Below, one piece after another: positions 8,126 through 53,738 of a DNA stretch of 64,000 nucleotides; positions within the stretch are counted from its first letter, which is position 1; each line of letters opens with the position of its first letter. Made by a program: the position numbers and the translations under genes. Origin of the DNA: Rhodosorus marinus CCMP1338 (lineage: Eukaryota; Plantae; Rhodophyta); contig JAMWBK010000003.1 in assembly GCA_029953675.1 (NCBI GenBank), forward strand, positions 186,001 to 250,000, given 5' to 3'. The notes under the pieces were generated by a model that was not told the DNA's origin, did not search any database, and worked only from the letters and a program-made list of their open reading frames with translations.

Positions 8126-9740
<1,615 letters not shown>

Positions 9741-11648: not shown

Positions 11649-12421
11649 ATGCGTCCGGTGTTTATCAGTAGCTTGTCGATGAGAGGGGATACTCCTGAAC
11701 TCGGCAGGCGTCCTAAAATAAAGAGGATTGAGCTTGTATCGGCCAAGCCCTGTCCGTATGCTCAACGGGCATGGATCGCTCTCGAGGAGGTGGGGGTCGA
11801 GTACACTCTTCGGGAAGTTGAGTTGTACGGAAGCAGGAAACCGGATTGGTTTTTAAAAGTGAATCCGAAAGGGAAAGTCCCAGTTCTTCTAGTCTATGAA
11901 GAAGGTGATAACCAACCGCGGCTTATCGTAGAGTCCAACGTGATCTGTCGGTACATCGCGGACAATCTACGCACTGAAGGTTCTGAACTTGCAAATCCTG
12001 AGGAAGCGAAGGTTTGGCATGAGTGGATCGATGATGACCTGGGCTACCATGGCAAAGAGCAGGTAACCAAGAGCCGAAGAGGTGGATCAGTGCTTGGTGG
12101 CGAACTTGAAACAAGCCTGCTAAAAGTTGAAGAGGTAACAACCCTCAAACGAACCCACGCAGCTAGTGAGTCTGTGGCCACCAAAGGCTAAGCTGCTCTC
12201 TTAATATGCCCTAGGCTCTAAGAAAAGGAGGGCCGTTCGTATGCGGAAATGATTTTTCGACTGTAGACGTTTCGATGTACCCTTTTCTTTCGCGACTTGA
12301 AGAGACGTTCTCCATGGAAGAGACTCACTTCTCTCATCTGCTTACCTACATCCAACTACTCAGGAGTAGAAGAAGTATCCAGCGAGCTTCCACCCAAGGA
12401 GGCTGGTGGTGGTGGTGGTAG
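11649..12421 (+). CDS. Glutathione S-transferase, cysteinyl (omega/lambda-like) class; start codon uncertain
   Basis: CPYAQR active-site motif, VNPKGKVPVL and IVESNVIC. Intron 12135-12214. Exon 2 reads ALRKGGPFVCGNDFSTVDVSMYPFLSRL...GGWWWWW-stop. Confidence 0.9.
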
Positions 12422-12548
12422 AAATGCGGGGGACTTGCGAAACCCTCTTCAAGGCTCTTATTGGTTACATAACCTCGTCCGCTCGGGGGATAGGCACTTG
12501 GCTCCATGGTCTCCGAGCGGAATAGCAAAATATTGGACGTATTCGAGC

Positions 12549-12599
12549 TCTCAGAGCGAGCACATTGCGGAACACCGAAGAGGTTCACGCCCTCGTTGT
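12549..12599 (+). repeat. 51-bp copy (49/51 identical) of P4-ATPase coding sequence 14736-14786
   Basis: gagcacattgcggaacaccgaagaggttcacgccctcgttgt is identical at 12558-12599 and 14745-14786, with a 2-mismatch extension upstream. Confidence 0.92.
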
Positions 12600-13751
12600 T
12601 CAATCAATCATTTTGTTGCGAAAAGACAATTTGGAGAGCCGTAGACCATCGTTGGAGGAGATGGAATCCGGCATAGCTTCGGGACTGTTTCGCGATCGCG
12701 ATGAGACCACTCTCGTTTCATATATCGCTGTCACCCTTTCTTCTCGTACTTCTACTACTACGTCCTCGCGATCATGGGATGAATTTATTCAGACACACAG
12801 ATCAGTTCAACGAAAGTGGTTTTCATTGCAAACGAATCGAAGGAGGCGTTATTTTTTTTATTTTTTTGATTAATAACGTCTCCTTCGTGATGATCAATCT
12901 CCCATCGAAAACCAGATCGCAAGAAAATACTCCACTAAAACTAGTTAAAAAAACGGACATTACCTTAAAGCGCCTCAACTAAACCCTTTTAAAATTCACA
13001 ACTGCGGCAGACGGCGGAATCCTAGGACCCAAAGCAAGCTGCTGTTAAACAAACTTACGAAAGAAGCTCAAATCTAGCTGCGAAGAAGCTCTTACCTAAA
13101 TACCAATTGATCTCAACGTGCCTGTTTACTACCTACGATTCCGACTGGTTTGCATTTCGGTGAGTTTTTCTCGAAGAAGCATCGATGTATGTTTTTAAGG
13201 ATTTTCAGTAGTAATCGTGATTGATAGTTTCCTGGGATGGGATTTGGTTTTCGATAGGAAATAGATTATTCTCTCGAACACCTGTTTTTGAATAATCTAC
13301 CAACGAACCACAATCACTTGAAGCAGCGCTAATCGCAAAGATGCTAATTGATAATTAATAATAAATAGGTCAATCTGTCGAAGATCGAATTTTCTTCTTT
13401 TTTGGGGGGGGGGGAATATGTTTTCGTCCGTTATCGGTAGAATGAGAGAGGAAATGGGCTTCGTAAAAGTAAAATTGGAAGAGGTGCCGCGCCTCCTCAA
13501 CTTTGCCAAGAGTCTTAAGATGGGCGTTGATGATCAGACAGAACGAACTGCTGGAAAGAGAGGAGTTGATTGTAGTGGAATAACTGGGAGGAGATTCTGT
13601 AGTGTGGGTTTAGCTTCAGGGGCTGGTGTTGAGACTGCTTCTGCAGACTTGATGGAGAGTCGAACATGGTGTTTGGGGAAGGATCAGATGGCTGCTTTTG
13701 TCTGAAGGTGACTTTGGGTTGTGATCTTTTTATTTCTAGTTTTTGGTGAAG

Positions 13752-16700
13752 ATGGGGGACGAGGATTTCGCTCAAGTGTTCGGAGGAGAGGCAGGAGCGA
13801 AGACTCTCGTGTCAGACACTGCGATCCATGCAACGAAGAGGGAGCTGAACCAGAAAAAGCAAGCTCCTGAAACACGAGTGGTGGAATTTAATAATGAGCC
13901 GGCGAACACTGGTTTCGTTAGCAACGTCATCAAGAGCACAAAGTATACCTGGTGGAACGTAGTTCCAAAATCCTTATGGGAACAGTTTCGAAAGGTCGCC
14001 AACTTTTATTTCCTGATCGTTGCAATCCTTACATTCATTCCGGGGGTGACATCGTTTAGCCCTAGTACCGCGGTGATTCCTCTTGTGCTCGTCGTGGGCT
14101 TCTCAATTGCAAGAGAACTTTATGACGACGGCATGAGGGGACGTTCGGACAGGAGATCGAACAACCAAAAGTTTTCCGTTTTGAACCGCGACGCGAAAGG
14201 TTCGGGGACGACAGAGGAGGTCAAGAGCTTGAACATTAAGGTTGGGGACATTCTTGTGCTGAAGAAGAACAGCCCCGTTCCAGCGGACTGTATTCCGCTT
14301 TTATCAACGGAAGAGGGTGGCGTACTCTACGTGTCAACGGCCCAACTCGACGGTGAAACAAACTTAAAGAGGCACCTCGTAACACAAGCTACTAAGGATC
14401 TTACGGACGCCGCACAGGTACGCGAGCAATAGCATTCACGTTCTGAGCAATTGTCTTCAAGTCCTGCAGATACATGCTTCCTTTTTTGTTCTATTGATGT
14501 GATACGTTACGTTCTCTTCACGAGCTAGCTTGTCTCCGGGAGGGCGCTCTCGATCGGCGGCACCTTTCCCCCCCGAACCTGATTTTCAAAACTTGTTCGC
14601 TCGACCATCTTAGGTTCACGCGCTCGACGGGCGAGCCGAAGTGAGTGGACCCAATCCTCAATTTGAGGTTTTCCAGGGAAGCGTCAAGCTTGCCGGTGCA
14701 GAGGATGCGGTTCCCGTCGACAGTCTAAACCTGGTTCTCAGGGGGAGCACATTGCGGAACACCGAAGAGGTTCACGCCCTCGTTGTGTACACGGGAACCG
14801 ACTCCAAGGTTGCTCTGAATATGAGAGATCCTCCGAGCAAAATGTGTCAACTGGACAGGACATTGAATTGGACGGTGCTGATGATCTTCGTTCTTTTGGT
14901 GATCCTGGTAATCGTCTTTGCGGCGCTCGCTGGTGTTGCCCAGGAACGAGTGGTTCAGGATTCTTGGTATCTTGGACCCACAAGTACAGATTCAGGCGTG
15001 GAAGTTGGCTTCCGTTCGGTTGGAACCTTTCTCGTTCTCTTCTCTGCTTGGATTCCAATCTCGCTTTTCGTTTCGCTGGAATCGGTTCGGGTATTCCAGG
15101 CCTTGTTCATGTTCCGAGACGAGAAAATGAAGAGCTTCGATGGACGAAGGATGGCAGCGAGGTCAACAAACCTCAGCGATACATTGGGGATTGTTCATAC
15201 GATCCTCAGCGACAAGACTGGAACGTTGACTAGGAACGTAATGGAGTACGTCGCCTGCGCCTTTAGCGGAGAGATCATTGACATCAGGGAAGATCCCTCC
15301 TTGATGAAGGATAGGCTTGCAGCTGGAGATAAGAAGGTTAACGATATGGCTTCAGCAATGGCTATATGTCACTCGGTCGTGCCAGACTTTCACGGAGGTA
15401 AGTCGTTTTGCTCAAACCACGTGGTTTCTTAATCGTCCAGCCTGCTTACAGACGTTGTTCGCAACTTCTGAACCTTAGAGGATGAAGGAGAGATTCTGGA
15501 GCATCCGACGTATCAGGGTCAGAGCCCTGACGAGGTCTCTCTCGTGGAGTCTGCGAGGTCCTTTGGTTTAGAGCTTGTGGAAAGGTCCGTAGACAATCTT
15601 GTTCTTGATCGAAATGGCGTAAAGGAAACGTACGGGATGGTCGGCGAAATCGAGTTCAACTCTGATCGTAAGAGGATGAGCCTCGTGGTTAAGATGGAGG
15701 ACGGGAATTACCGAGTCTACACGAAGGGTGCGGATACGACCATGTTCCCAAGGATACTGCTCTCTTCTGAGGAGGAAAAGGGAATCGAAGATGATCTGCA
15801 CATGTTCGCGGTGGAGGGGCTTCGAACGCTCGTGTTCGCTTCAAAGGACATCACAGAGGAGCAATACCAATCATGGCAAACGACGTGGAGAGAAGCTCTG
15901 TTAAGCACTGATGAGCGCGAGGAGAAAATGGCTGCCGCTGCGGAGGTTGTGGAATCGGACATGAAGTTCATTGGAGTGACGGCCGTAGAGGACAAGCTCC
16001 AGGATCAGGTCCCTGAGACAATCGAGTTTCTGCGAAACGCGGGAATTTCTCTGTGGGTGCTTACGGGAGATAAGCGGGAAACCGCCGAGAACATAGGATA
16101 CTCTGCAGCGATGCTAAGCCGATCAATGACCGTAGTGCACATGGAGGCACGTTCCCAGGAGGAGGTTTCGACCATGCTCGAGGACACCTACAAGACCCAC
16201 TGTGACAGCGCTGGGTGAGCCTATCTTTATACGGCTTTGCAGCAGCCCGGTAACACACAGATGTTTAAAAAATATTTCGCTTTTTTTTTTGGGCCCGTGC
16301 GTAAACAGGTTCGAAGGTACGGTTGGAAATATGAAGAGCCTACGGTCATTGACCAACGTGAAGCAAGCAAAGAAGTACAGGCCAGGCGTGCATGATGGGG
16401 ACAAGTCACTGGCAGTGATAATTGACGGGAAGACACTTCAGTTTGTTCTAGACTCGTATGCGAAGTACTTCCTCGCAATTACGGACCACTGCCAAACGGT
16501 TATTTGCTGCAGGGTCACGCCGATGCAGAAAGCCCTCGTCGTTCGGATGGTGAAGAAGCTACGTGGGTGCGTTACTCTTGCAATCGGTGACGGGGGAAAC
16601 GATGTTTCGATGATCCAGGTACGGAAGATATTCTCATGAAAATGGGCGAGTAGATGAAAGGGGAAAAAGCTTAAATACGCCGAGTCAAAATTGACCTGTA

Positions 16701-17927
16701 TCACTAACTGCGTTGCCCTGGTACTATTTGTGTCCTCATTATGCAGGAGGCTGATGTTGGCGTGGGACTGTTTGGAAAAGAAGGCACGCAAGCGTCACGC
16801 TCCGCGGACTTTGCGATTGGCGAATTTAAGCTCTTGAAACGCTTGTTATGCATTCATGGGCACTATTGTTGGGTTCGGAATCCTGGGTTGATCAACGTAT
16901 CATTCTATAAGAACGTGTTTATCACCATGGGGCAAGTCTTTTACCAGTTCTTCTGTCAGTTCTCTGGGACCTCAATCCACAACGAGTACATCGTGACGGT
17001 ATTCAATGTCGTCATTACGTTGTTCAATCCGATCTTCTTCGCGCTGTTCGAGAAGGACTTAGATGAAGAAGTCCTAATGGAAAAGCCCGAAATGTATCAA
17101 GCTAATCGTGAGCGCAAGAATTTCGGGAAGAGAACTGTCTTAGAGTGGGTAATGGGCTACGCCCTGTGGCACTCCATCGTGACCTTTTGGGGCCAGTACG
17201 GAAGTCTCGGTTCGGTAGGGAACATGTCTTGAGCCTCCAAATTGATAATGCGACAGGGCATTCATGCGTATCACCCCCTGGAAACATGCTGAAACCCTCG
17301 TTCGCGTTATGCCCTTAGGTTCGGGAGTCGAATTGGTTGGACGGTTATGAGGGGGGAATCAATGCGTGGGGATTCGGCCTCTCTACGCAGGTTATCGTTA
17401 TTGTCCTTGTTAAGATGTTGCTCATGGCACGCACGTGGAACGGTCTATATGTAAGCTTGACATTGCAAGTTTTTGAAAGGCCGGTGGACTACTACGCTGG
17501 GAACTATGCTGACCCATATCTTTTTTCCCTGTACTCGCAGCTCGCGTCGTTCGTCATCAGTCTGGGTGTCTTTTTCTTGATTGTACCCATAATAATTTCT
17601 TTCATCGACGACAATTCTCTCAACGGAGTCCTGCCAACCACCTTCTCCTCCGGAACCTGGTGGATGACCTTCATCGTCAATGCGACTGCTGCGTTCATGC
17701 TCGACTTCATTGTCGTGCTTATTCGAAGGTGAGGAGCTCGTCAGCAGTTTCAAGTCAGCGGAAGTTCCCCGTTATGTGTTTCCGCACCTTCGCAAGTGCG
17801 GGATGGGACTTTTGTGAGGGGCCGGACACGTCTAACGGCTCAGTACCTATCCGTCAGGTTTTATTTTCCGGACGCCATAACCATGGAACAGGAAAGGGAA
17901 TACAGCAGATACTGGACACGGAAGTAG
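13752..17927 (+). CDS. P4-type ATPase (phospholipid flippase, DRS2/ALA family)
   Basis: DGETNLK, PISL, DKTGTLT, SPDE, FNSDRKRMS, KGAD, LTGDK and GDGGNDV motifs. The final exon reads FYFPDAITMEQEREYSRYWTRK-stop (TAG 17925-17927). Confidence 0.97.
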
Positions 17928-18312
17928 AGGTCCTAAATCGGAGAACATCGTGTCTCGTGTCCGTAGCTTGCGCCTTAGTGCTGCGCGCGTTCGCGAAACC
18001 GATCTGGTTCTTTCCTAGGTTCCTCTCAAAGTCTTCTTTATTTACTCTCGTATTTGCGGATGATCTCTGTGTTGTCAACTCAACGGGATTTCGGATGCGG
18101 ATGTATGAACCCAAGATGAGACCCCTGTACGGACTCGGGAGCGATGACCAGCGCTTTCGTCATAGCCCAAGGAGTAAACAGCTCGCTGATCACCCAGGAC
18201 CGTTTGGTCTGGTTGGCAAGAAGGCAGTTTGGCATTACAATTCTTTTAGCTGAAAGAACGGTTTCGACTGATGATATTGTAAGATGTTGCCTATGCAATA
18301 AGCACCGTCCGG

Positions 18313-18933: not shown

Positions 18934-19140
18934 CTCTCATGTGAATGCAGTCATACCCAAAACAAACTTCACTCTCAAAAGGAGAATCTCCATCTCAGCA
19001 GCTTTTCTGTGCTTCCCTGCCTGCCCCACAATCTCCTCCGCAGCCCAGCGAACAACCATCCCAATTCTCGGAAATCCCCCTTGTCCTGGTCAGGCACTTT
19101 TGCAGGAGGAACCGCGGGAACATCTCAAGAGGGCGGGCCG

Positions 19141-20519: not shown

Positions 20520-22050
20520 GTTGAGGAGTTGGATGGTGATGGTTTGATGGTGTATCGTTTGAGCGAGTCTATGTGTACGATGGGTATCCGGAAGAAGAGG
20601 TGTTTGGGGAAGAGACGAGGCAGTGATAGGAGAGTACGCAGTGGAATACGTCCTCGAGAACGGCTTGTGATGGGCATACTGTTTCCTAGCGAAGAAAATA
20701 CCCAGCTCGAGGGTTTGCTGGGCTTTGAGCCCTTTGTGCTCGTGAACAGAAGCATTCGGTCCGTGTGCACATAAGCTAGATGGGGCTGGAGCGAGCGGGC
20801 TATATATTGTGCATTGAACGGCTGGACTCGATGCTTCTAAACAGAGAACAGTGGACGTAATGACGGGGTTCTGCTTTGACCACCAGAAGCCTGACTGAGA
20901 TGAAAGATAGACTTGTAGATTTGTTGTTTATCGGCCACGCCTTTTCACAAAACCTGAACGAAGCTGTGTATACATTTGTTGAAGATGGCTCTAGTTATTT
21001 CTACCATCCTTGTTGCAAACCATCGATCTTGACCCAGATAAAAGAATTCCAAGCAAGGAGAAGCAAGGAGAACTCTCTAAAGCGCGCTCTCTGTGAGAGC
21101 TATGCCGTTAGGTGTATAGCTCACTATTCCCCCAGCTACTGTCCTATTGTCTGTACCTCTCGTATGGAGATGCCCTTGTCAGCACCAACTCCGGTGACAT
21201 ACAATGGCTGTGAATATTGAAATTCGAAAGCATTTCTCATTCGTGAAAAATGGGCACGGTCAGGCTAACAAGATTGAAGGCAAGATCAACAGAGAGCACT
21301 GAAACCAAGCCATGGATTATTCCTTCTCCGAGCCGCAGCAGGTACAAAAGACGATGGACGTCCTCGTAGCTTTTTGAGGACCGTTGATTCGAAGACTTGG
21401 ACAGCCAGCCAGCCAAAATGGGGCGAGTTCTACTTCAACGATAGTCCTCTGGAGGAACTTGAGAAGGGAATACCCTCGAGGACACGTAAATGGGCTTCCT
21501 CAATATCCTTGCTGACCTGGCCCGGAAAAGGGACAATCCAGGAGCGGAGTTCCAGATGGTTGTTGGTCTGTCCTTCACTCTTCTCCACAATCGTGCCTGT
21601 TTGTTCATGCCTGAGAAAATTTTCGAGCTTCAGCAATCACTGCCTACCCATGTAACTAGACTAGGTCGTGACAAGGTCATGTCTACAGCAGAGATAGAAG
21701 CAACATATCCCCAGAACGGGCTCTTTTGTCTTGTCGATTCATAGTCATTGAATAAGATCAGCACCGATCATCGGTGGTCTTCGAGATTTAGAGTCGAGAA
21801 CTCAAAACGGATTCAGAGTTATGAGAGGTGCAAGCGTTGAGACGGGATTACAAATCGATCTGAGGCATATCGCGAGGGACATCTGTTCCTGCGATAGGGA
21901 GTTGAGGTAGTTCGTTACCACGAACGAAAAATGGAGAGAAGAGATTCAAAGTTTCCTTCGGTATTTTGGACACGCACCATCGCGAAGCCTTTTCAATAGA
22001 CTGAACTGGGCCGAAACCAGACAAGGCAACCGAGAAAGATCGAACTCATA
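20520..22050 (+). pseudogene. Probable decayed coding remnant of unknown family
   Basis: Protein-like open stretches (20876-21220, 21490-21744, about 21820-22050) are separated by stops and frame changes, with no clear splice signals. No recognisable motif. Confidence 0.25.
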
Positions 22051-23176
22051 ACGAAGATGCATGCAGCTTTGTCTGTGACTTGACATCAACCCCTTTCTTC
22101 ACAGCCTAACTAACCTGAGAAGCGGGAGAGAAGACACGTATAACGCGCGCCCAACAACGAAGCGCCGTGCGGAAGCAGAGTGTCAAAAACAGCTGCGTGA
22201 AGAGACTAACAGGACGAGCCGGGTCGATACGAAAGAGGCCAGGCAGCAGTCGAAAACCCTCGCCGTCTGCGACTGGCAGAAGCATTGGACAAGTACCTAA
22301 CAGACCAAGACTGCCAGTCTTTCGATTGAAAAAACAATCATTTAGAGTTACCGTGTTTCTCTCGCGCAATACCTGGGAACATGCCCAAGATCTATCCAAC
22401 CAAGGGGGTTAAGTAGGTCCCCGATGACTTCCAAACCAGAATTATTCCCTTTTTATCTTATAAAAACGATATTACACCTCCTCAGGAAGTGTAGCGCACC
22501 CCCTCGAGGAATTGAACCAATCGATCCTCTGCGACGAGCCAGTTTGATTGCTCTGAATCAACTAGATGAACCTTGAAAACAAAAAATCAACCGAATAACC
22601 CCCTCCGAAAAAACCCAACCTCCAACCCCCTCGAGGACTTTTCTTTAAGTACTGGAAAATGATTGAGATATAAAAACAAGTCTTTACAAGTACAGACAAT
22701 AGACGTACCGCGTTTCCGCCCCCATCCCGACACATTGCTCAACAACGGGAATATGTGAATTTCGATGACAAATTTCTTAATCGCTACGTTGTTCTCCACA
22801 AGGGGTAGAAAACATATCTTCCGCTATTATTACCTCTCGAAAAAGATCCCTCGGAAATTATGGAAATTCCGATGGCGTGACCCGGAAAGGCTTTTTGACA
22901 ATTTGCATAGGGGGATTCCCTGATTCGCCCTTGTGGCAGGGTACGCTCAGGCCACATCCTCTTTGCGAGCACATGGATGCGGCTACGCGCTCATCACTAT
23001 GAATCTGTGTAGAGGCGCGCGCGGGTGAGACCATTTGCGCCTGAAGTATGGTTAGTGGGATGGTGCGGTGGATTTGAGTTCCTGAGTTGGGAGCAGGGTT
23101 TAGGTGACGGCTTTTTTTCTTTTTGGACCGGATTTGGCGTTTGTTGGCTTTCGGGGGATGGTGCCTCGATGCTAGA

Positions 23177-24973
23177 ATGGGTGAATTGAAAGAGGTGGTG
23201 AGGAGGGGGCGCGTCCCTTATGAAATCGCGGGGTTGATTGCTGCGCTGGGAAGTGTTCTTGTATGGACCGAGTTGCTGCCCCTGTGGGGATTTCCTTTGG
23301 TATGTGCAATTTTAGGAGAGGCAGCGGCGATGACGATCGACGTCGTTGAAAGGAAGCGCCGCTTGAGAAGGGTGGAGTCTATGCCGAAGCCGGTTAACGA
23401 GAAGAAAGCGTACACGTGGGAGGAAGTGGCCCTGCACAACACAGCCGAGTCAGCGTGGATAGCCATCAGGGGCAAGGTTTATGATGTGACAACCTTCTTG
23501 GATAGGCATCCAGGAGGATTCGAGCTGCTTCTACTCTGTTGTGGCAGGGACGCCACGGACCTGTTCATCTCCTACCATCCATTCACGGACAAACCGGATC
23601 AGATCCTAAATAAGTTCGAGATAGGCGAAGTCTCAACATATGAACATGCCACCTTCGCTGACGATGGCGGATTCTACGAGGAGTGCTGTGAGAAAGTGAA
23701 GGAGTACTTTGAGAGCACCAAGCTGGATCCGAAGAACCCAATGCTGATGACCGTTCGAATGGTCCCAGTCTACGTGGTCAGCGCATTTTGTTTCTACGTT
23801 TCGTTCGTTTCCCATTCTTTTTCATGGCCTGTGCGTGCCCTGAGTGCGCTCCTATTTGGCGTGTGCCAGGTAAGGTGATGAGCATGCAGTCGGCAATTAC
23901 GGAGCAGAACAACTGAACGCGCCTGAACTCGTTGTATTACAGGGTCTGCCTCTAACTGGGTGGATGCACGACTCGTCTCACGCCGCCATCGGGCACTCGG
24001 AGACGTGGTGGTGGACGGTTGGGCGCCTCTCGCTCGACTGGATTTCTGGATCTTCCATGCTCTCTTGGCGTAATCAACACGTCATCGGTCACCATGTATA
24101 TACCAACGTGTTCGGTGCAGATCCTGACTTGCCCGATGCCAAGGAGGGTGATTTCAGACGCATCACCGAGCATCAGTTCTGGGACAATGTCTACTACTAC
24201 CAGTATTTGTACGTACCACCGCTTTACGGTCTGCTTGCCATCAAAGCAAGACTTCAGGTGAGAAATTCACTCTAGCATTTCAAGCCTCCTGTTGTAGTGT
24301 CCTGCTGGGCTTTTGTTGATTGCAGCCTATGCTCACAGGCCTAGTGGGCAGATCCTCTGACATTCTGGTGCTTTTGTTTTTTTTTTTCCTGGTCTAGGAC
24401 TTTTACTCCGTCTTCTCCCAGCACATGAATGGGCCAATTAGAGTGAACCCGATTAGCGCACAGGATTACCTGAGAATCGGGTCCTCCAAACTGTTCTGGG
24501 CTTGGTATCGATTGGTGGTTCCATACGCGCTTTTTGACTGCAATCTTGTGGATTTGGCTCTGCTGTCATTCCTCACCGACCTTGTGGTTGGATACTGGCT
24601 TGCGTTCAACTTCCAGGTATCGCACGTTTCCGATATATGCGAATTCTATTCCGAGGTCGAGCACGGTGGCAAGCCATGTTTCAAGGAGGGCTGGGGTCCC
24701 CTGCAGGTGAAAACCAGCCTGGACTATGCGCATGGAGATCCGATCGCGACCTATCTGTCTGGAGGCTTAAATTATCAGACCGCGCACCACCTGTTCCCTT
24801 CCGTGAGTCAGGTCTATTACACCGAAATCACGCCTATCATCATCGATGTCTGTAAGAAGCACAAACTCCGCTATAACGTGTTGCCAAACTACAAGGCTGC
24901 TATTTCTGGTCATATTCAGCACCTGAAGAAGATGGGTGAAGAGGGTAGGGCCCCAGAGCTTAAGCTTGAGTAA
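23177..24973 (+). CDS. Front-end fatty acid desaturase with cytochrome b5 domain (delta-5-like)
   Basis: HPGG cytochrome b5 motif, histidine boxes HDSSH, HVIGHH and QTAHHLFP; two introns; stop at 24973. Confidence 0.93.
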
Positions 24974-25394
24974 ACTGCGCTCATCGTCGGTGCTTGAAGT
25001 AGGAGCGTGGACGGTCAACTGTTTGGGAGTAGTGAACGGACTACACGCGAACCCGATGGAAGAGGCGACAGATGCACTGACTCTTGTTGCTCAAGCGGAA
25101 GTTTGCATCAGCGAAGCTGTTAGTCGCAATGCGTATAGATATCAGATGAATTGGCAGTAGTCAAAAACCCAATCACATTTTGTAGTAGTGGATAGAGTGT
25201 TTCAGATTTGACAGAAAGTAAGAATATACGAAGCTGAGGTTCATGACACGAATCGTTTCCTTCCACCAAGCAGTGTTAAAGGCATCGCTGCCGGGGCTAA
25301 CGTGAACTTTACTGGGCAGCTGCCTACTGCAGCGCATCACTATTGCCCCAGAGGACTTGATGCTATCTCGGCCTCAAGGCCTCTTCCGACATGC

Positions 25395-25659
25395 AAAGCG
25401 GAATACAATACTTCACTTTTCTTCCCAAATGCTGATATGCTTTTAACCAAGCCGCCCCACCCTCTTATGTCAGTGTACTATTTCGTACTATGACTTCAGG
25501 TGGGAAAAGGAACGAGGCGTAGTGAAAGCGGAATACAATACTTCACTTTTCTTCCCAAATGCTGATATGCTTTTAACCAAGCCGCCCCACCCTCTTATGT
25601 CAGTGTACTATTTCGTACTATGACTTCAGGTGGGAAAAGGAACGAGGCGTAGTGAAAGC
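25395..25659. repeat. Perfect 130-bp tandem duplication
   Basis: 25395-25524 equals 25525-25654, followed by a third AAAGC at 25655-25659. Confidence 0.95.
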
Positions 25660-26222
25660 TCAAGTTGGTATGAGGAAGCTCAGACTTCACTAAAACTGGC
25701 TGACGGGAAGGCGGTTCTCCCCCCCCTGAAACAATGCAACCCATTATCTGGCAATAATCGCAATTTCACGATGGGATACATTCCACTCCAAAAAGAAGTT
25801 TAAAAGAGTCTTAAAATTTGCTGGACATTTCAAGTACCCCTTTCGCAGAAAACCCCAGAATACCCGAGAAATTTCCCACAGAAATCGACCCCTAAGGAAA
25901 AAAACAACGAGAAATATTTTGATCCGCATCGTGGAATTGTTTTAGAAAATAAAGGACAGATTAAGAAACGCTTGATTGGGGCTTTGTTGGACTGTGTACC
26001 CTGTCCAATTTTGGAAGAGGTTGAGAGGGAAAAGGGGGAAGGGGTCGAAGCTGAGGGTTAGATCTGCAGGGGTTTAGCGCGTTGGGATTGAATCAGCGGG
26101 AAAAGGAGGTTGTTGGAGTGATCAGAGGAGGTTTCCCGGTTTAGTATAGTGAGTGCTAGCTGATTGGTACTTGATTTGCGCATAGAGAGAGAGAGAGTTA
26201 TCCATTTCTTTGGCAAGGAAAT

Positions 26223-36654: not shown

Positions 36655-37437
36655 GTCAAATACGAAGCGTTTCGAGGTTGATCCTTGGCCGTGTTAATAT
36701 TCAACACAGAATGCGTTCATTCTAATTGCCCATGCAGCCGTCATGGGGGATCATTTGGAATTCAATATGGTTCCCCTGCTCCCTAGTACCGTCATTTAAA
36801 GTGCTTGAGTTCTATATCCCAGACGTCTCGCGGTTTCCAGAAATTGAAAGCCTGGGTAAATCCAGCAGAATCTGCACGGGACAACTCGATGCACTCGCAG
36901 AGAGTCTGGTGGGAGGCTTTCATGCCTGGAATTCACATCTGATCCCTCCTACCACTACCGCAATTCCTCACTTTGTATCCATCCACGTTGTCTCAACCAG
37001 TTAGATTCCCTCATCAATCCAACCTTTCTGATCCTCTTTTGTCTCTGCAGTCAACTCGAGCTCTGCCGTGATGTTGACATTTCCGAGTTTTGAATGTGTA
37101 GGATCTGAGATTGTCTAAGAGATTCCCCCAAAAAGTGGAGACCACGTTTTGGGGGTGTTTGCATATAGAAGGAAGAGTCCTTCGTACAAGCCAACGACGA
37201 GAAGCAAACTAATCCTGCGCCAGTCATACATCCTCCCCTTGACAACATTCTTCGTGGAAAAAGCAATATTAGTCAAAACCGTCAATCTAATGCGAAAACA
37301 ATCAATTTATTCAATTTTGCTGTCCCATGGGACTGTGACGGTTCAAGAAAACACATTACTTGTCCCAAGACATCCCCATCCAAATGCTAATTATCAACAT
37401 AAATTAGATTCTCATGGATGAGATCGATGATTTTGGT

Positions 37438-37620
37438 GATGATGATCCGTTTATTCAGAGCCTAACTACCCTGAGAAGCGAGAAAGAAGACGCTGATGAC
37501 GCGCGTCCAACAATAAGTCAGCGTTGGAACGCCACAAGGTCAAGGACAGCTCCGTGAGGAGGCTATCAAGACGACTTGGGTTGTTTTGGAAGAGCCCACG
37601 AAGAGATCTGGCTGTGTCTT
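37438..37620 (-). mobile_element. Solo 5'-truncated 3' end of an RLE-type non-LTR retrotransposon
   Basis: The minus strand reads RSLRGLFQNNPSRLDSLLTELSLTLWRSNADLLLDARHQRLLSRFSG-stop, then GCTCTGAATAAACGG-(ATC)3. It is homologous to the copies at 48.7-51.15 kb. Confidence 0.75.
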
Positions 37621-38120
37621 TGCTTGGTTCGGAGTATCAAAAACTATGGTCCCAGATTTTGGAATCAACTGCTTCAGGGGGATGTGCGCTGGGTAAGGAA
37701 CGGACTGTGATGGGGAAGATAAGCAATTACCAGATTCTGACTCCAATTCTTCGATGAGCAAAAAGAGGAGTCGGGGGGTGGGGATGTTTTGTAGAAGATA
37801 ATATTATGTGTAGACAACTTGTGTGCAATTGGAGCAAGTAAAGAGGGATTGGGCTGAGAATCGAGGATGAGGAAGGACGAAGCGGAGATGGTAGAGCACG
37901 TAAAGCTTCTTCTGAACTGAATTGGAGGATCCAGCTGTTCACGGTTTGATGCTTTGGAGCGTCTACGGATGGAATGCGAGTTTGCAGTTCCTGACGGAGA
38001 ATAAAATGTGAGGAGATGGGACTTGATTGCGAGAAGACGTGAGATACATCCAGGCGGACGATTGGAGCGCTGATCACGTGCTTCGGAGGGTGTCCAGCAC
38101 GGATATCTAGCCGAGCTGAG

Positions 38121-47703: not shown

Positions 47704-48716
47704 GGGAGTACAAGCTACATGTAGACAGGGCAGGCAACAGGATAGACGATCCCTATGACAAAATCCCGTTTCCGCTGAACCATTTACTGCGACTGGGTCC
47801 ATTCTTCTCCTCATCTCGAACGCAGCTGTTGCTTCACGTGATTCAATGGACTTGACTTAATCGCACTGGCAAGTTGAGGTTTGCCCAACTTGCTTCAATC
47901 GTACGCCGCCCAACGCAAGCACGCGTCTGTGAAACATCAGTTGAAGCGCAAACCTACGCAACTCTCAAAAGCGAATGTTCTCACTGTCACCCGCGCGTGA
48001 AGCCCGTTTCTTTTTTTTTTAATCGCAGCACATTCCACTGTCGGTTTCCGATAGTCAGTTTTAGTCTCCTGAACAGTTGAAAGAGCCGCACAACGCATGT
48101 TTCTAAGTAGTTTATGGGGAACGTGCAAAGTGGGGACTAACCTTTCCACTTGTTGCGAGCCCGCAAAGTGGGAAGCTACTTTCCCACCAGTATGAGGCAA
48201 GGGAAAAACGTTCAGGAGGGTTCCTAGGTCACAAACGTGGCGAAGCGGCTCTTGAACGGCCCAAAAGAAGTCTTGAATGTTCCGAAGGCTACAAAAAGAG
48301 TTGTGAACGATCGACCAAGTCGAGAAAAGAGCCTTGAACGGCTGAACGGGCCAAGAAGGGGCCAAAACAGTAGTAAATAGTCTAACGTAACCCCGTACTT
48401 TCTACATCGTTCTCAGGCACTGGGTACGGATCGGGGAGTGGAGTATGTCTGGAGATCTAAACAATTTTTGCCCTTCACTTCCCGAACGACTCCCAAAGGT
48501 AAGACCCCTTGAACAAACCTAATGAAGCTTGACATCACTAGTACCCCGAATTAGTTACTTTTGTCTTTTTCTACCTCTTCCCAAGTTCTGCTACTTCAGC
48601 GCGATTCTAGCATGGTCTACTTCTAAGTAACTCCAATGTATCCTTTAGCGCGATTCAAATCTAGTAATGGCTATTACTAATCGCCACTAACACTAACCCA
48701 AGTCAAGGCCGACTCT

Positions 48717-49225
48717 CCGTTTATTCAGAGCCCAACTACCCTGAGATCATCCGTTTATTCAGAGGCTAACCCTGAGAAGCGAGTGACAAGACGCTGATCA
48801 CGCGCGTCTACAAACAAAGTAGCATTTGAGCGCCACAGGGTCAAAGAAAGCCCCGTGAGCAGACTATCTGGACGCCCTGGGTCGTTGCGAGAGATACCTC
48901 GCAGCCAGCGAGAACCTACAGTATCTATCAAGCCAAAGCATTCAATAATGAGGGGGACACACCGGTATGTCACCACCGAATCGCGAAACGTAGGGTTTGA
49001 CATCGCTGCCGCATACTGCGATTCTTTCACATGCCGCATGGACCGAGCTGCTGCTCCTCGACGCCGAAAAGGATTTCTCATCGCCGACTACGGTACAACC
49101 AAACCGACACTCGATCCGATGCTACCCTCGGCTATCCCAAGGGTAAGATCAAGACCCCAATATACACCCCGACGGTTTACTGGACCTCCGTCGTCGAACT
49201 GTGAACATTGATTGGGTTCGACTTC
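48717..49225 (-). mobile_element. Decayed RLE-domain C-terminus of a non-LTR retrotransposon (CRE/NeSL-like), plus a 30-bp second tail at 48717-48746
   Basis: ORF 48755-49081 reads GAAARSMRHVKESQY...YRCVPLIIECFGLID...RWLRGISR...DSLLTGLSLTLWRSNATLFVDAR...FSGLASE-stop. The stop TAA lies inside AATAAA, followed by CGGATGAT. Confidence 0.78.
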
Positions 49226-49226
49226 T

Positions 49227-49476
49227 CAGTATATTCAAAGCCTAAGTTCGCTGCGAAGCGAGAGGCAAGACGCTGATGGCGCGGGGGTAGAACTACTTAG
49301 GCTCAGAATAAACGGATGATGATGATGATGGCGGGCGTCCGGCAAGAAAGCAGTGTTGGAATGCCAGAGGGTCAAAAACAGCAATCCAAGGCGTCTTGAT
49401 AGCGTGAGGAGGCTATCAAGGCGCCTTGGGTTGTTCCGATTGAGCGCGCGAAGCCAACGAGAATCTACACTATCAA
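49227..49476 (-). mobile_element. Further 5'-truncated retroelement copy interrupted by an opposite-strand tail insertion (49282-49325)
   Basis: The minus strand reads DSVDSRWLRALNRNNPRRLDSLLT...LTLWHSNTAFLPDAR. The inserted piece ends GAATAAACGG(ATG)n and is flanked by TGATGGCG at 49274-49281 and 49326-49333. Confidence 0.72.
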
Positions 49477-49477
49477 T

Positions 49478-49549
49478 TCCTTCGTAATGTAGTGGTTAGG
49501 ATAGCGGTCTCTCACACCGTTGGCCCGGGTTAGGTTCCCCGCGGGGAAA
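49478..49549 (+). tRNA. Degenerate tRNA-Glu(CTC) (pseudogene or SINE-head-like)
   Basis: 72-nt cloverleaf layout with TAGTGGTTAGGAT D-arm, anticodon stem GCGGT/ACCGT, loop CT-CTC-AC and CCGGG T-stem. Mismatches occur in the acceptor, D and T stems, and the T-loop is TTAGGTT instead of TTCGATT. Confidence 0.7.
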
Positions 49550-49554
49550 TATGC

Positions 49555-49890
49555 AATTTCATGGACCGGAATTTGGAGTATGAGGTCGCCCTGCCGGTGG
49601 CAACGGCAATTGCTGATGTTCGTTTTCAACTCTAAACTCCTATGCCAAAGTCACCAAACACTAGACTCTCTAGGTAAACACAAGAGTACGTTTTGTAGCG
49701 CAAAGTCCTTCGGTAAAAGCTCCGTTGATTTGAAGAATATGCTCATAAAACCACCACCCCACGGGTTGTGGGCTTTCGCCCTCCTTGAAGAGCTGCATAA
49801 TCTGCTCTGATATCAACGTTCGACGCGCGTCATCAGCGTCTTGTTTCTCGCTTCTCAGGGTAGTTAGGCTCTGATAAACTGATGATGATG
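49555..49890 (+). mobile_element. Plus-strand retroelement 3' end; core 49820-49890 clear, upstream part more diverged
   Basis: DARHQRLVSRFSG-stop then GCTCTGATAAAC(TGA)n tail. Upstream frameshifted pieces IADVRF, KSFG and LLEELHNLL weakly resemble the RLE domain. Confidence 0.6.
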
Positions 49891-51038
49891 AATGCGGGCC
49901 CCGGAGCGCGAGGAGCGCTGGGGCCGCACGGGCCATCAAGACCCAGAGAGGAGATATGGTCCGTTGAACAGAGTCAACGGCAGGCTCAGCAGGGAATGTA
50001 CGTACCAGGGCCTCCGCGCGGGCCTCGACGGACCCGCGACGGAGCACTTGGGAGTAGGAAGGCCGCACCGGGCGGGTAGCGGCGGCAGGGGGCACGGGAC
50101 CAGACACAGAAGAGTCGCCCAGAAGAGATAGGTTCGGGAGGACAGCTGTCTCATGGACAGCTGTCGCAACCGCGTTTGTCCGAGTGGGACACGCCCAAGT
50201 GGGACATCGGCCGCCGCCGTCGTGGCGCCGGGGCACTGGACATCGGCAAAAGCAGCCAGGGTGGAAGCCAGCTCCGCGAGGCGGTTGGCTTCAGCAGCAG
50301 CAGCAACAGCGCAAGCAATTTGGACAACTAAGGCTTCCGCAGTAGCCTTGGTGCAACCTGGCAGCTCGGCGAGTGTGCCGAATCTTCCGAGTCGTAGCTC
50401 CACTGACTGCGGAGAGGCAGTTGAGGAAACCATCTGAAGCGGAAATTCAGAGGGACGCTGGGGGAAGAGTGGCGCAGGTGAACCCCACAAGCACCGCCGA
50501 TGACCGAAATATCGCCGAACAAAACAGCAACGCCAAGATGAGGCCAATCCCCTACCGGAATCACCTTCCCAGACCAAAACAACCCAAAAAACCCTTCGCG
50601 GACGACCCGGAAACGCCGGGAAAGGCGAGGAACAGCCGCAGAAAGATGGCAGTCCACACGAAGATCGCGAACAAACTCAATCGCGCCCAACCCAGCTAAC
50701 AAATAACCAGTGCGTGTCAACGCCTGAACTATTTCCGACTCTTCTGTGTCTGGTCCCGTGCCCCCTGCCGCCGCTACCCGCCTGGTGCGGCCTTCCTACT
50801 CCCAAGTGCTCCGTCGTGGGTCCGTCGAGGCCCGCGCGGAGGCCCTGGTACGTACATTCCCTGCTGAGCCTGCCGTTGACTCTGTTCAACGGACCATATC
50901 TCCTCTCCGCTGGGTCTTGATGGCCAACGTGCGGCCCCAGCGCTCCTCGCGCTCCGGGGCCCGCATTCATCATCATCAGTTTATCAGAGCCTAACTACCC
51001 TGAGAAGCGAGAAACAAGACGCTGATGACGCGCGTCGA
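49820..51038. repeat. Long inverted repeat: arms 49820-50117 and 50736-51038, 618-bp spacer
   Basis: Manual alignment of the arms shows only two substitutions and two indels (2 nt and 3 nt). The region is visibly GC-richer than its flanks. Confidence 0.93.
49900..50433 (-). pseudogene. Possible gag/ORF1-like N-terminal fragment of a transposon
   Basis: ATG at 50433 starts an Ala-rich helical stretch. After an apparent frameshift come a Pro/Ala-rich linker and RPSYSQVLRRG, similar to the SYAxV motifs of retroelement ORF1 proteins. Confidence 0.3.
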
Positions 51039-51146
51039 GCAATAAAGCCGTGTGGCGCTCAAATGCTGCTTTGCTTGTAGACGCGCGTCATCAGCGTATT
51101 GTCTCTCGCTTCTCGGGGCAGTTAGCCTCTGAATAAACGGATCATC
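50968..51146. mobile_element. Two divergent retroelement 3' ends joined at about 51050 (minus copy 50968-51050, plus copy 51051-51146)
   Basis: The minus copy reads ALLLDARHQRLVSRFSG-stop. The plus copy reads WRSNAALLVDARHQRIVSRFSGQLASE-stop, then AATAAACGGATCATC. Confidence 0.78.
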
Positions 51147-51253
51147 GGTATCACCGTGAAGAAGCGGAAGCTGAGACTCCCCCCCAAACCGCGCAGGCGA
51201 GCCAAAGTCGACGCCGAGGAGGAAGGTCACCTTCCTGAACTCAGAGGGGTGGC

Positions 51254-52520
51254 TTACGAATCCCGATGTATGTCCCACGAAAGGCTTTTTTGGATTACAT
51301 CGATCCTCGAAGGGGCCGGACATGAACCATCCATGGTGGTTGATACTATAGTGATTGATTCCATAGGGATTGATACTATCGTCACTATTGTCGTTAGTGT
51401 GTTCTCGTGGTTCTTCACAGTTTGAGCGATCTCTTCAGCCCCATACGCCGGCTTGGACGACCTTTCGCCTCTTCCGTCCAACTTGGACACCTCCTTTCTG
51501 GGGGGCTCTTTTACGCTGGGCCTGTCGCGTTTTCGACCGCAAAGACCTACTCTACGTACGTAAGTGCGGATACAGTTCGTTGAGAAAGAACTGTATATGT
51601 ATGAAGCCGCTCAGGCACTCCTCGTCGCAGTGCTTGAGGTGCTCCTTTAGCGTCGTCTGAAATTCCGCGGAGTAGTCGCTGGCGCTCGCACCCACGTTGT
51701 CGATCCGGGAAACGCGGTTGGCCAGTTCTGCGTCCTTGTTGTGTACGGCGTAACGCCTTCTCCTGGCCACTTGTAGCACTGCCACAAACAGCTTGACGGG
51801 TTTCTCAATAAGACTCATGCTCGTATCGGAGATGCAGTTGTTCTTTCTGCACGAGGGACAACCAGCAACGCCAAGGGACAGGGAGTTCGAGCGTTCCAAC
51901 TCCGGACAGTTTAGTCAGATATTTCCTTTCGACTGTTCCTGTAGCAGAGCTCTTTCCATAGTGTTGCTGTGAGTGGTAAACATCATCATCCCATCTGCGG
52001 TATAGAATGACTTCGGTAGCCTCTGCCTCTTCTCAAGGTTTTCCAGACTCCGACTTGCGTATCCAGGAATGCAGGATTCTAAAGGCGTATCTACAGTAGA
52101 GATTCATCTTCGGCGATTTCTGCGGTTGTGTAAGCGAGGGACCAGAAACAGCCACACACAAATCTCTCGTCCGCCTTCTTGCAATGAACATCCTCAAATA
52201 GACCATTTGCCTGTGAGGTGCCCCTTCGTCAACGTCTATCGCACGCTCACTAGAGACGAAGTTGCTCCCTGCAACGGGAACAACACAGCGATCATACATT
52301 TCTTAAACACCGGTGATAAGTAAATACGGGCCCATAAAAGATGCCAAAGGGTGGGCAGACGGGCAGAGTCCCTGCAGAGCTCTCAACGAGTGTCCTTAAA
52401 CTAAGCCAGACGAGTCCCTTCACGCGACGCACTACGCTGTCGCTTAGTCTGAGAACTGTAAACATTTGCGTTTGAAGAGAGAACACCATATCCAACTGGA
52501 TTTTACGATAATGCCACAAA
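51254..52520 (-). pseudogene. Unknown gene or decayed remnant
   Basis: Protein-like frames at 52033-52299, about 52090-51552 (one in-frame TGA at 51915-51917) and 51254-51490. No recognised domain. Confidence 0.3.
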
Positions 52521-52711: not shown

Positions 52712-53738
52712 ATGTTGAATTTCCTTTCTGCCGTTTGCTGTATTGGTGGGAGTGACGGCAAAGTTCATCTGGGAAAAAAGACATTGGCCGTGGATTATGG
52801 TTTGCGAAGAGTGGGTTTAGCATTGTCAGTGGGCATTGCTCCTCGGCGTCTTGAGAGGGTTTATAATCGTGGAAATTTGGGGGATGTCGCACGTCGTATA
52901 TCTGATGTTGCTCGACGAGAAATGGCTCTGCAAGTTGTAGTAGGACTTCCCTTGAATTCAAGAGGTACGAGCTATCCGTTGCTCGAAAACACTTGGACAA
53001 TTCCTGTAAAGCGTCGCCCCTAAAACCACGACTGCTTCTGAACTTACCCCCGCAGGTGACGAAGGCGAGCAAGCTGTGGCCACCAGAAAATTCTGCGAAT
53101 ACCTTAGAATCGCTCTCCCGGAACCGCCCATTTACCTTTGGGACGAACGGTTCTCCACGCAAACTGCACGGAACCGGCTGATGAATTCAAGTGCGATTAT
53201 CCTAGAGAACCACACTAGCCTTCTTCTGGCTTTAAGGAGCTTGTAGGGAACTGAACTCCCACTTTGGAATGCATCCAACTCATGGATATCTGTCCTGTTT
53301 GGTGAACAGAGACATACAGGAACCAAGTTGAAAATTACGTCGATTCCGAGGCGGCGGTGGCGATTCTTGAAGACTTTTTCGAGAACAGCGGCGACGATGC
53401 GGAACTCCTCTATCCCGGTCGAGGCGGTCTCGATTACGGTGCGGCTATACTGACCTCCGGTTTCTCCAAGTAGAAGGCTTGGACACGACCCAAAACCTCA
53501 TCGTGGGCCTTGTCTACATGTGTTTCAGGGAAGCCTCAAGAGGTGTGCAATAACGACGATGGTCCTCGTTCCTTCAAGGAGTGGAAGAAGGCACTGATTC
53601 AGACGGCGGACGAAGGGGGAAACCCGCGGTCAAAGGAAAAGAAGAAAAAGAAGAGAAAAAACCGGAAAAAATAGTAGGAGACTCGTCCGTCGCGCTCGTA
53701 GAGAATCCGGGCGGAAACGATCTGACCGCCATCACTGA
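52712..53738 (+). CDS. yqgF: YqgF/RuvX-family nuclease (pre-rRNA maturation), probably organelle-targeted
   Basis: LAVDYGLRRVGLA, VVVGLP, WDERFST and VDSEAAVAILEDF. A probable last exon (53529-53738) encodes a K/R-rich tail; the unspliced alternative stops at 53473. Confidence 0.88.

Follow-up and report, generated by a model that had tools for sequence, protein, structure and literature searches.

The 64,000-nt stretch of the Rhodosorus marinus CCMP1338 genome analyzed here (GCA_029953675.1, JAMWBK010000003.1:186001-250000; hereafter, the window) contains a cluster of short repeats between 48.7 and 51.3 kb. These repeats are the broken 3' ends of a previously unannotated, R2-like non-LTR (long terminal repeat) retrotransposon of R. 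marinus that carries a restriction-like endonuclease (RLE). Moreover, the region as a whole is probably a nest of dead copies of a single R. marinus family—one that targeted itself, through target-primed reverse transcription (TPRT), at CATCA/GATGA sites. The assembly is that of a red alga and was published in PMC10250338. Single-exon pieces of genes for TOR, Nramp, P450 and cytochrome b5 mark the content of the window as eukaryotic, and the TOR open reading frame (ORF) of the window is 100% identical to the R. marinus protein NDN08_002818. The nest occupies a 5.7-kb gap between the end of the TOR gene (47018) and a RuvX-like gene (52712-53674), with no NCBI-called gene in the gap (gene calls were taken from locus L009, which is base-identical to window 28121-57018).

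The preliminary description of this DNA had interpreted the repeats as 3' ends of an RLE-type non-LTR retrotransposon, and had called for a full-length relative linked to a reverse transcriptase (RT); our analysis recovered such a copy. The 108-aa ORF of copy B (48755-49081) matched only 12 short Rhodosorus fragments in a phmmer search of 1.84 billion representatives. One of them (P0012) led to a 26.9-kb R. marinus contig, termed L002, in which this coding region for the C-terminus occurs over 20 times, in three subfamilies. The window and L002 together represent ~91 kb of examined genome, complemented by a few transcript contigs. A decayed copy of ~4.1 kb, interrupted by a nested 431-bp copy, was found at L002:8410-12984—with a 5' region, an RVT_1 reverse transcriptase, a post-RT region, a CCHC knuckle, a PD-(D/E)xK domain and the nest-type tail arranged in this order on one strand. 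The reverse transcriptase (L002:10141-11367) was identified by Pfam with an E of 3e-12, and the closest PDB matches of this piece were L1 ORF2p (1.4e-13) and R2 (1.4e-12), indicating an RT of the type found in long interspersed nuclear elements (LINEs). The CCHC and PD-(D/E)xK modules are located C-terminal to the RT in the same element, and the arrangement from RT through RLE is collinear in L002:10141-12967.

The C-terminal module displays the motif order C-x2-C-x14-H-x4-C, then RRH, E, (A/P)D, D and K-x3-Y. With the RT as the sole query, relatives were found in sponges, an octopus and marine protists (30-36% identity), and several of these relatives have C-termini with the pattern CxxC..H..C..RH..E..RPD..D.T..K..KY..P.A.E.G..LS.A.QR.NA, matching a hidden Markov model built exclusively from Rhodosorus sequences. 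The CCHC, RRH, E, (A/P)D, D, K and Y columns are conserved across the three Rhodosorus subfamilies and these RT-linked relatives, which had been found by RT alone. Furthermore, the motifs KxxKY, PxxxExxG and LSxxLWRxNA highlighted in the preliminary description (K-x3-Y, VPLIIECFG and LSLTLWRSNA in copy B) align with the equivalent columns of the RT-linked RLE proteins. A profile-profile comparison (hhalign) of the Rhodosorus-only and non-Rhodosorus alignments resulted in a probability of 99%, with an E of 4e-18 over 201 columns.

The relationship to R2 became significant only after the RT-linked relatives were added, as the Rhodosorus-only profile gave a weak R2 match against the PDB (E 0.67). 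The combined profile (A2) matched exactly the CCHC+RLE region of R2, i.e., 9nl3 (1.2e-10), R2Tg 9dou (1.6e-10), 9nl2 (5e-7) and R2Bm 8gh6 (0.006); since the non-Rhodosorus profile alone had an R2 match at 1e-7, the Rhodosorus rows strengthen it. Single-sequence phmmer of the RLE piece against the PDB returned nothing, and Pfam detected nothing in the 108-aa ORF or in longer RLE pieces. In addition, an AlphaFold model of the C-terminal module, made on the wider alignment, reached a pLDDT of 76.7 with a core above 85 (an earlier model on a shallow alignment, A1, had a pLDDT of 50 and was not used for the fold search). When this model was compared with the PDB by Foldseek, the top seven matches were all R2, with E values from 1.4e-6 to 3.6e-4, a probability of 1.00 and TM values of 0.50-0.58 over ~272 columns—and the next match had an E of 2. 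Because the module is linked to an RT and is of the R2 type by profile, profile-profile and fold comparison, we conclude that the element is an RLE-bearing non-LTR retrotransposon.

A contrasting reading, which makes the repeat the terminal part of a family of host genes or a piece of some other element class (LTR, DIRS or Penelope), has a negligible probability. The annotation of fragments as hypothetical proteins by NCBI speaks for a host gene, and nothing beyond it does; on the other side, collinearity connects the repeat with a LINE-type RT and with an R2-like CCHC+RLE module, the copies are 5'-truncated with target-site duplications (TSDs), and no LTRs, tyrosine recombinase or GIY-YIG domains were found. 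Both versions of this reading are refuted by the RVT_1 domain and by the R2 matches in profile and fold. The contrary outcomes named in the preliminary description—the lack of both an RT-linked relative and an RLE match, or a host-gene origin—were thus not what we observed.

In a collection of 5.8 billion proteins, the C-terminus was matched only by MMETSP transcripts and by R. marinus proteins annotated as 'hypothetical', and the searchable literature contains no paper joining Rhodosorus and retrotransposons. Judged by these unnamed protein relatives and by that literature, the R. marinus element belongs to a well-known kind of mobile element, in which it forms a new family. The first of two scans of metagenome DNA gave 0 matches, and the second only three 18-mers shared by chance with unrelated contigs. 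The N-terminal ORFs of the two longest copies yielded neither Exo_endo_phos nor any other Pfam domain at E<=10, and gave no sign of an apurinic-type endonuclease, a zinc finger, a Myb domain, a protease or RNase H; both copies are decayed and may have lost a domain. Among the subfamilies of L002, the first corresponds to the window family (..KDSQYAAAMSNPTFRDS..), the second is distinguished by ..KERRYAESMASLPRAEG.. and ends in HASLPSS*, and the third (..KKIKYAGALSSPGVRAS..) includes a nearly full-length copy of ~4.6 kb at 21592-26146 with a different tail.

The 3' ends display the hallmarks of TPRT. A common 3' end is shared by 25 copies, which vary in length from 32 to 1410 bp and have different 5' starts (32 to 731 bp for the copies compared at their 5' ends), and TSDs were identified for three clean insertions: GATGGCG(C/G)G (9 bp, 49275-49283 / 49327-49335) for copy D+ of the window, CACCATAATC (10 bp) for L002:15534-15594, and GATG/GATC (4-7 bp) for L002:18239-18969. 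The usual stop codon is the TAG in ..CAGGGTAGTTAG.., or a nearby TAG, located ~21 nt before the terminal GGAT. According to the preliminary description, the stop falls inside AATAAA with essentially no 3' untranslated region (UTR); the AATAAA stop applies to copy B only, where the ORF at 48755-49081 runs to the TAA inside this hexamer because the family's usual TAG in ..CAGGGTAGTTAG.. has been lost, whereas the 3' UTR is indeed very short (<=~25 nt). Two variants of the tail were distinguished. Variant 1 (..GAATAAACGGAT) is mostly followed by CAT or CATCAT runs, i.e., GGAT(CAT)n, and variant 2 (..CTGATAAACTGAT) has the form TGAT(GAT)n, with GAT runs in copies E and F of the window and (GAT)9 at L002:16330, while a third variant-2 copy (L002:26316) is devoid of a GAT run. 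The (GAT)n tails originally noted are therefore present with variant 2, but (CAT)n runs are as common. No HDV-like (hepatitis delta virus) ribozyme or R2 3' RNA element was found by Rfam at E<=1.

Within the nest, repeat finding, BLAST with the longest copy and multiple alignment revealed seven copies of one ~60-nt 3' terminus, spread over 48715-51146 in both orientations (Table 1). The seven tails within ~2.4 kb reported previously were thus all recovered, and the tail consensus quoted for them was reproduced in alignment A4. Only six of these tails are independent, however, because E and F sit inside an inverted duplication of 99-100% identity and represent one event that was copied. The longest copy had been estimated at ~500 bp, but the homology of copy B ends at 49067, which leaves ~320 bp, and the ATG at 49081 is fortuitous. 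The 23-nt tail core AGTTAGGCTCTGAATAAACGGAT occurs 5 times in the window at <=3 mismatches, as compared to 0.00 expected (100 shuffles). Copy D- is a single copy split in two by D+, for which the second copy of the TSD reads GATGGCGGG at 49327-49335. The 5' start of copy F, (G)CTTTATTG, is identical to that of L002:16257-16330. A tail-in-tail nest of its own is also carried by L001, a 1629-nt transcript contig (JGI 3300017118) most likely from R. marinus, and since this contig comes from a transcriptome, nests are transcribed—perhaps by read-through.

Target choice showed a hot spot within the element's own tail. Across the window, L001 and L002, we identified 11 cases of a family 3' junction abutting family sequence, and 4 of these 11 self-insertions, at three loci, fall 51-57 nt from the 3' end of the target copy, at GACGCGCGT^CATCAGCGTC. 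These are D+ in the window, L002:18239-18969 (splitting a + copy into 17617-18234 and 18970-19026), L001:452-769 (junction at L001:769) and L001:397-453. The junction sequences of the four insertions all differ (GATGATGATGATGGCGGGCG, CTAAGATCACGCGCG, GAAAAGATGACGCGCG and CATCATCAGCGTCC), so they represent independent events, and the three antisense insertions resume at the same GATGACGCG / GATCACGCG, corresponding to one nick position. In a simulation of random insertion weighted by coverage, i.e., with insertions drawn in proportion to the family's per-position coverage, at least 4 of 11 insertions fell in any 15-bp window with a P of 0.003, and in any 8-bp window with a P of 0.0004. The hot spot is nearly palindromic (GACGC..GCGTC around TCATCA), which would explain its use in both orientations.

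The same motif was observed at other junctions. CATCA or GATGA immediately follows the element at about half of the 23 3' junctions, including several outside the hot spot: copy 37445, in a gene-free gap, is followed by CATCATCACC (the sole case clearly in host DNA), L002:15190 is followed by CATCAAGG, and the motif is found in older element copies at L002:19026 (CATCATTAAGG) and L002:15534 (target CACCATAATC). A preference for TGATG/CATCA sites supplied by the element's own tail had been proposed in the preliminary description, and the recurrent hot spot, drawn from 11 self-insertions, supports a preference for CATCA/GATGA that includes the site in the own tail. A candidate duplex target of the RLE domain is GACGCGCGTCATCAGCGTC, which carries CATCA.

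Several observations weigh against a nest built by self-targeting TPRT. The self-insertions (n=11) were counted by hand and the hot-spot sample is small; L002 is almost entirely transposable element (TE), so many self-insertions are expected by chance; and some junctions are devoid of CATCA/GATGA (GGAT|CTAAGG.., GGAT|CAAGTGG.. and GGAT|CTTCTTC..). At most junctions, the repeat is not assignable to the tail rather than to the target. In copy G, the target begins with GGTATCACC after a CATC that it does not supply, so that some of the repeat stems from the tail of the element itself. Moreover, the TSD length varies between 4 and 10 bp, the 3' 100 nt have no significant RNA fold (z -0.04) and no evident RNA recognition structure, and every copy seen is decayed by frameshifts and stops, with no intact ORF that would indicate current activity. 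Finally, the large inverted duplications of 96-100% identity indicate that nests were built by rearrangement as well as by retrotransposition.

Some of these points would also fit a passive accumulation, in which nearly random insertions are tolerated in gene-poor, TE-rich DNA and later duplicated or inverted, with no preference for the element's own tail. As L002 consists almost wholly of this family, a random insertion would usually meet a copy; E/F and both 5' termini in the window are part of an inverted duplication, L002 contains 370-390-bp inverted duplications at 96-99% identity, and the junctions that lack CATCA/GATGA are several. We nevertheless regard this explanation as rather unlikely, since four independent insertions fall within 7 nt, three of them with the same nick (P 0.003 to 0.0004), and since the motif also occurs outside the hot spot—in the non-element flank of 37445 and, in older copies, at L002:15190, L002:15534 and L002:19026. 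A different proposal holds that the true target is the microsatellite (GAT)n.(ATC)n, by analogy with Dong at (TAA)n or Togen at (TG)n, so that insertions into the own tail are incidental to its TCATCA and its gain of GAT/CAT runs. RLE clades commonly target microsatellites (PMC4640811). The (GAT)9 end at L002:16330, the (GAT)2-4 or (CAT)2 of other copies, and the tandem pairs B-C and L002:16249-16257, in which the downstream copy lies in the repeat tail of the upstream copy, would agree with such a specialization. The proposal is improbable, however, as 0 copies have a microsatellite on both flanks (repeats are present at the 3' junction only), and the reconstructed empty sites (the own tail, L002:8646 and L002 ref ~2203) hold <=1 CATCA/GATGA and no run.

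The tail-only units of about 60-100 nt could, in principle, also constitute a mini-element resembling short interspersed nuclear elements, i.e., a non-autonomous unit mobilized in trans by the RT via the shared 3' end. Copy F and L002:16257-16330 agree in their 5' start, (G)CTTTATTG, and both have a variant-2 tail and (GAT)n; moreover, within window 50735-51146, genuine 5' and 3' termini of the element are linked in one orientation. Yet no more than two units have a 5' end in common, the starts of other short copies vary (32, 34, 57, 61, 95, 97 and 113 nt), and no internal promoter or tRNA-derived head is present, so that we attach a low likelihood to a dedicated mini-element.

For a family that targets itself by TPRT, the most likely course of events is one in which the chemistry of nicking, the priming by tail microhomology and the assignment of the (CAT)n/(GAT)n repeats to the RNA are adopted from R2-type elements. 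The element, of ~4.1 kb, encodes a long N-terminal region without a recognizable domain, the LINE-type RT, the CCHC knuckle and the C-terminal PD-(D/E)xK RLE. The RLE would nick the target just 5' of (C/G)AT(C/G)A, and the freed 3'-OH would prime cDNA synthesis on an RNA 3' end bearing a few CAU or GAU repeats—with pairing or slippage at the RNA end possibly setting the repeat number and, in this way, giving rise to (CAT)n / (GAT)n junctions. Synthesis would usually abort early, leaving 5'-truncated copies of 32 to ~730 bp, and second-strand cleavage 4-10 bp away would create the short TSDs. Because the element itself carries a good site (GACGCGCGT^CATCAGCGTC, 51-57 nt from the 3' end and used in both orientations), new copies would often land in old tails, resulting in tail-in-tail and head-to-head nests. 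Afterwards, the nests would be remodelled by inverted duplications at the DNA level, as exemplified in the window by E/F together with the two 5' termini.

This inverted duplication (49820-50117 / 50736-51038) has arms of ~300 bp with 99-100% identity, where the outermost 111 bp (tail and junction) are 100% identical and the next 172 bp 99%, with small indels between them. Each arm consists of an element 5' terminus joined antisense to a tail, and the duplication may have originated from palindrome formation, gene conversion or an assembly artefact. L002 contains inverted duplications at 7884-8269 / 12916-13301 and 12055-12800 / 13302-14048, with 96-99% identity and including 317 bp of non-element flank, which suggests either frequent palindromic rearrangement in R. 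marinus nests or poor reliability of the assembly at these places. Both inner ends of the window duplication and L002:8410 start with (C)CGACTCTTCTGTG behind three different upstream sequences; these represent two independent cases, and (C)CGACTCTTCTGTG is probably the true 5' terminus of the family. The 614-618-bp spacer between the arms is probably host DNA, and we do not count it as part of the element. An assignment of the spacer (618 bp) to the N-terminal coding region was rejected, as it has no match in L002 and both arms begin at the same base as L002:8410.

Table 1. Copies and fragments of the retrotransposon family in the window (window positions)
Feature	Position	Strand	Description
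Copy C	48715..48746	-	32-bp 3'-terminal fragment directly downstream of the B tail; tandem, same orientation
Copy B	48749..49067	-	Longest 3' end in the nest, 319 bp; encodes the last ~100 residues of the RLE domain
Copy D-, 3' part	49226..49283	-	Final 59 nt of the element, closing on the right with the 5' TSD GATGGCGCG (49275-49283) of D+
Copy D+	49284..49326	+	34-nt tail fragment (49284-49317) and (GAT)3; antisense insertion into D- at the hot spot
Copy D-, 5' part	49321..49477	-	Positions 183 to 45 from the 3' end; truncated 5' end adjoins the tRNA-Glu-like sequence
Internal element fragment	49563..49618	+	RLE-coding region, 80-84% identical to L002; without tail
Copy E	49822..49889	+	62-nt variant-2 tail (49822-49883, ..CTGATAAACTGAT) and (GAT)2; antisense to the joined 5' terminus; left arm of the inverted duplication
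X-left	49890..50120	-	~232 bp from the start of the element (93% identity with L002:8410-8645), up to the candidate true 5' terminus CGACTCTTCTGTG
Spacer	50121..50734	.	Unique 614-618 bp between the inverted arms; without match in other R. marinus loci or the rest of the window
X-right	50735..50968	+	Repeats the 5'-terminal 232 bp (95% identity with L002:8410-8645); F interrupts it after ..GGGCCCGCATTC
Copy F	50969..51047	-	73-nt variant-2 tail (50975-51047) and (GAT)2 on the minus strand; E is its duplicate
Copy G	51048..51146	+	95-nt variant-1 tail (51048-51142) and CATC; head-to-head with F; antisense insertion beside the internal fragment to the right
Internal fragment, target of G	51147..51321	-	82% identical to L002:12066-12232, about 750-920 nt from the 3' end
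Internal fragment	48389..48447	+	Same element, outside the range of the preliminary description
Solitary 3' end	37445..37603	-	159 bp, tail GGAT-CATCATCACC..; gap between a Tab2-like gene and TOR
Older 3' end, same family	22091..22258	-	168 bp, diverged (~70%)

Other features were observed in and around these copies. A tRNA-Glu(CUC)-like sequence at 49477-49550 (+) scores weakly (Rfam 31.6 bits vs a threshold of 29 bits); its T-loop/B-box (GGTTAGGTTCC) is altered and its acceptor stem imperfect, and it may be a pseudogene. Element fragments are present on both of its sides, with the truncated 5' end of D- abutting its first base. Targeting of tRNA genes by the element was considered and dropped: neither L002 nor the other loci examined contain a tRNA, and such targeting looks unlikely because the nest in L002 is free of tRNAs. 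In the region 37415-37700, copy 37445 may sit in a short unannotated ORF (ATGGATGAGATC..); speculatively, with GATCT as a 5-bp TSD, the joined flanks of this copy would read MDEIWLCLCLVRSIKNYGPRFWNQLLQGDVRW followed by GTAAGG, and NCBI has no gene there. Three imperfect direct repeats with a spacing of 15 bp (TCCATGGTGGTTGATACTATAGT-like) are located at 51330-51382, just to the right of the nest. Finally, 48156-48283 shows weak similarity (69.5% over 128 bp) to positions 984-1103 of another Rhodosorus transcript contig (L003:984-1103) and may be another low-copy repeat.

RLE-bearing LINEs are early-branching and mostly site-specific retrotransposons, and R2 is now studied as a gene-insertion tool. 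The family described here would be a red-algal RLE lineage, of which the searchable literature describes none, and its features of interest are an almost absent 3' UTR, a short target motif and a target site built into its own tail. It offers a compact natural case for the coupling of target choice and 3'-end recognition in TPRT, as well as for the building of TE islands by self-targeting. For the annotation of R. marinus, the 'hypothetical proteins' NDN08_000222-224 and similar entries are explained as transposon fragments. A further-reaching scenario, which we consider unlikely, is that the last ~57-75 nt act both as a handle for the RT and as a landing pad for the endonuclease, so as to yield self-extending arrays and ~74-nt tail-only mini-elements; the family would, in addition, be an RLE lineage in Archaeplastida outside the named clades. 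If this were true, such arrays could seed red-algal TE islands, possibly centromere-like, in parallel with the Zepp clusters of green algae.

Zepp elements are L1-like, with an apurinic-type endonuclease and poly(A) tails, and their clusters occur one per chromosome, probably at centromeres. Together with ZeppL, they are green-algal LINEs found in clusters of mutually nested copies (PMC3446292). The Rhodosorus element resembles Zepp in this self-nesting, i.e., in behaviour only, but its endonuclease is an RLE and its tail GGAT(CAT)n / TGAT(GAT)n. The combination of RT, CCHC and RLE is known in algae and protists from Dualen / RandI (PMC5029228), with which the Rhodosorus element shares all three modules; the apurinic-type endonuclease and RNase H of Dualen, in contrast, were not detected in it.

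Most members of the RLE clades—CRE, NeSL, R2, R4 and HERO—are specific for a target, which can be, among others, a microsatellite, a tRNA gene or another transposon (PMC4640811). Like NeSL/Utopia/Togen, R4/Dong and HERO, the Rhodosorus element bears an RLE and belongs to a mostly target-specific type; the targets of these groups, at which tandem arrays occur, include (TG)n and (TAA)n microsatellites, tRNA genes and other transposons (PMC4640811). The Rhodosorus target, however, is a motif of 5 nt, not a lengthy gene site or an extended microsatellite, and unlike in microsatellite-specific LINEs of the Dong, Togen or Kibi/Koshi type, the GAT/CAT runs are found only at the 3' junction and not on both flanks. 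Unlike NeSL, no Ulp1/C48 protease domain was found in the Rhodosorus element. Utopia has been reported only from Amoebozoa, SAR and Opisthokonta, and not from Archaeplastida (PMC4640811), while the host of the Rhodosorus element is a red alga.

Unlike R2, the R. marinus copies are located in intergenic DNA and in one another, rather than in 28S rDNA, and no rRNA was detected in the window by Rfam. In further contrast to R2, no N-terminal zinc finger or Myb was detected in the Rhodosorus element, the 'PD' position is AD/AE in the Rhodosorus copies, the 3' UTR has ~21 nt as compared to the structured UTR of hundreds of nt in R2, and neither an HDV-like ribozyme nor an R2 RNA element was detected by Rfam. 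The RT of the Rhodosorus element, moreover, scores alike against L1 and R2, being no closer to the latter. Nevertheless, the two share the layout of a single-ORF LINE, with the RT followed by a CCHC knuckle and a C-terminal PD-(D/E)xK domain, as in R2Bm and R2Tg (8gh6, 9dou, 9nl2 and 9nl3). They also have in common the absence of poly(A), extra bases at the 3' junction, 5' truncation and, as far as can be inferred for the red-algal element, sequence-directed nicking. The C-terminal ~270 residues match R2 both by profile (E 1e-10) and by fold (Foldseek probability 1.00).

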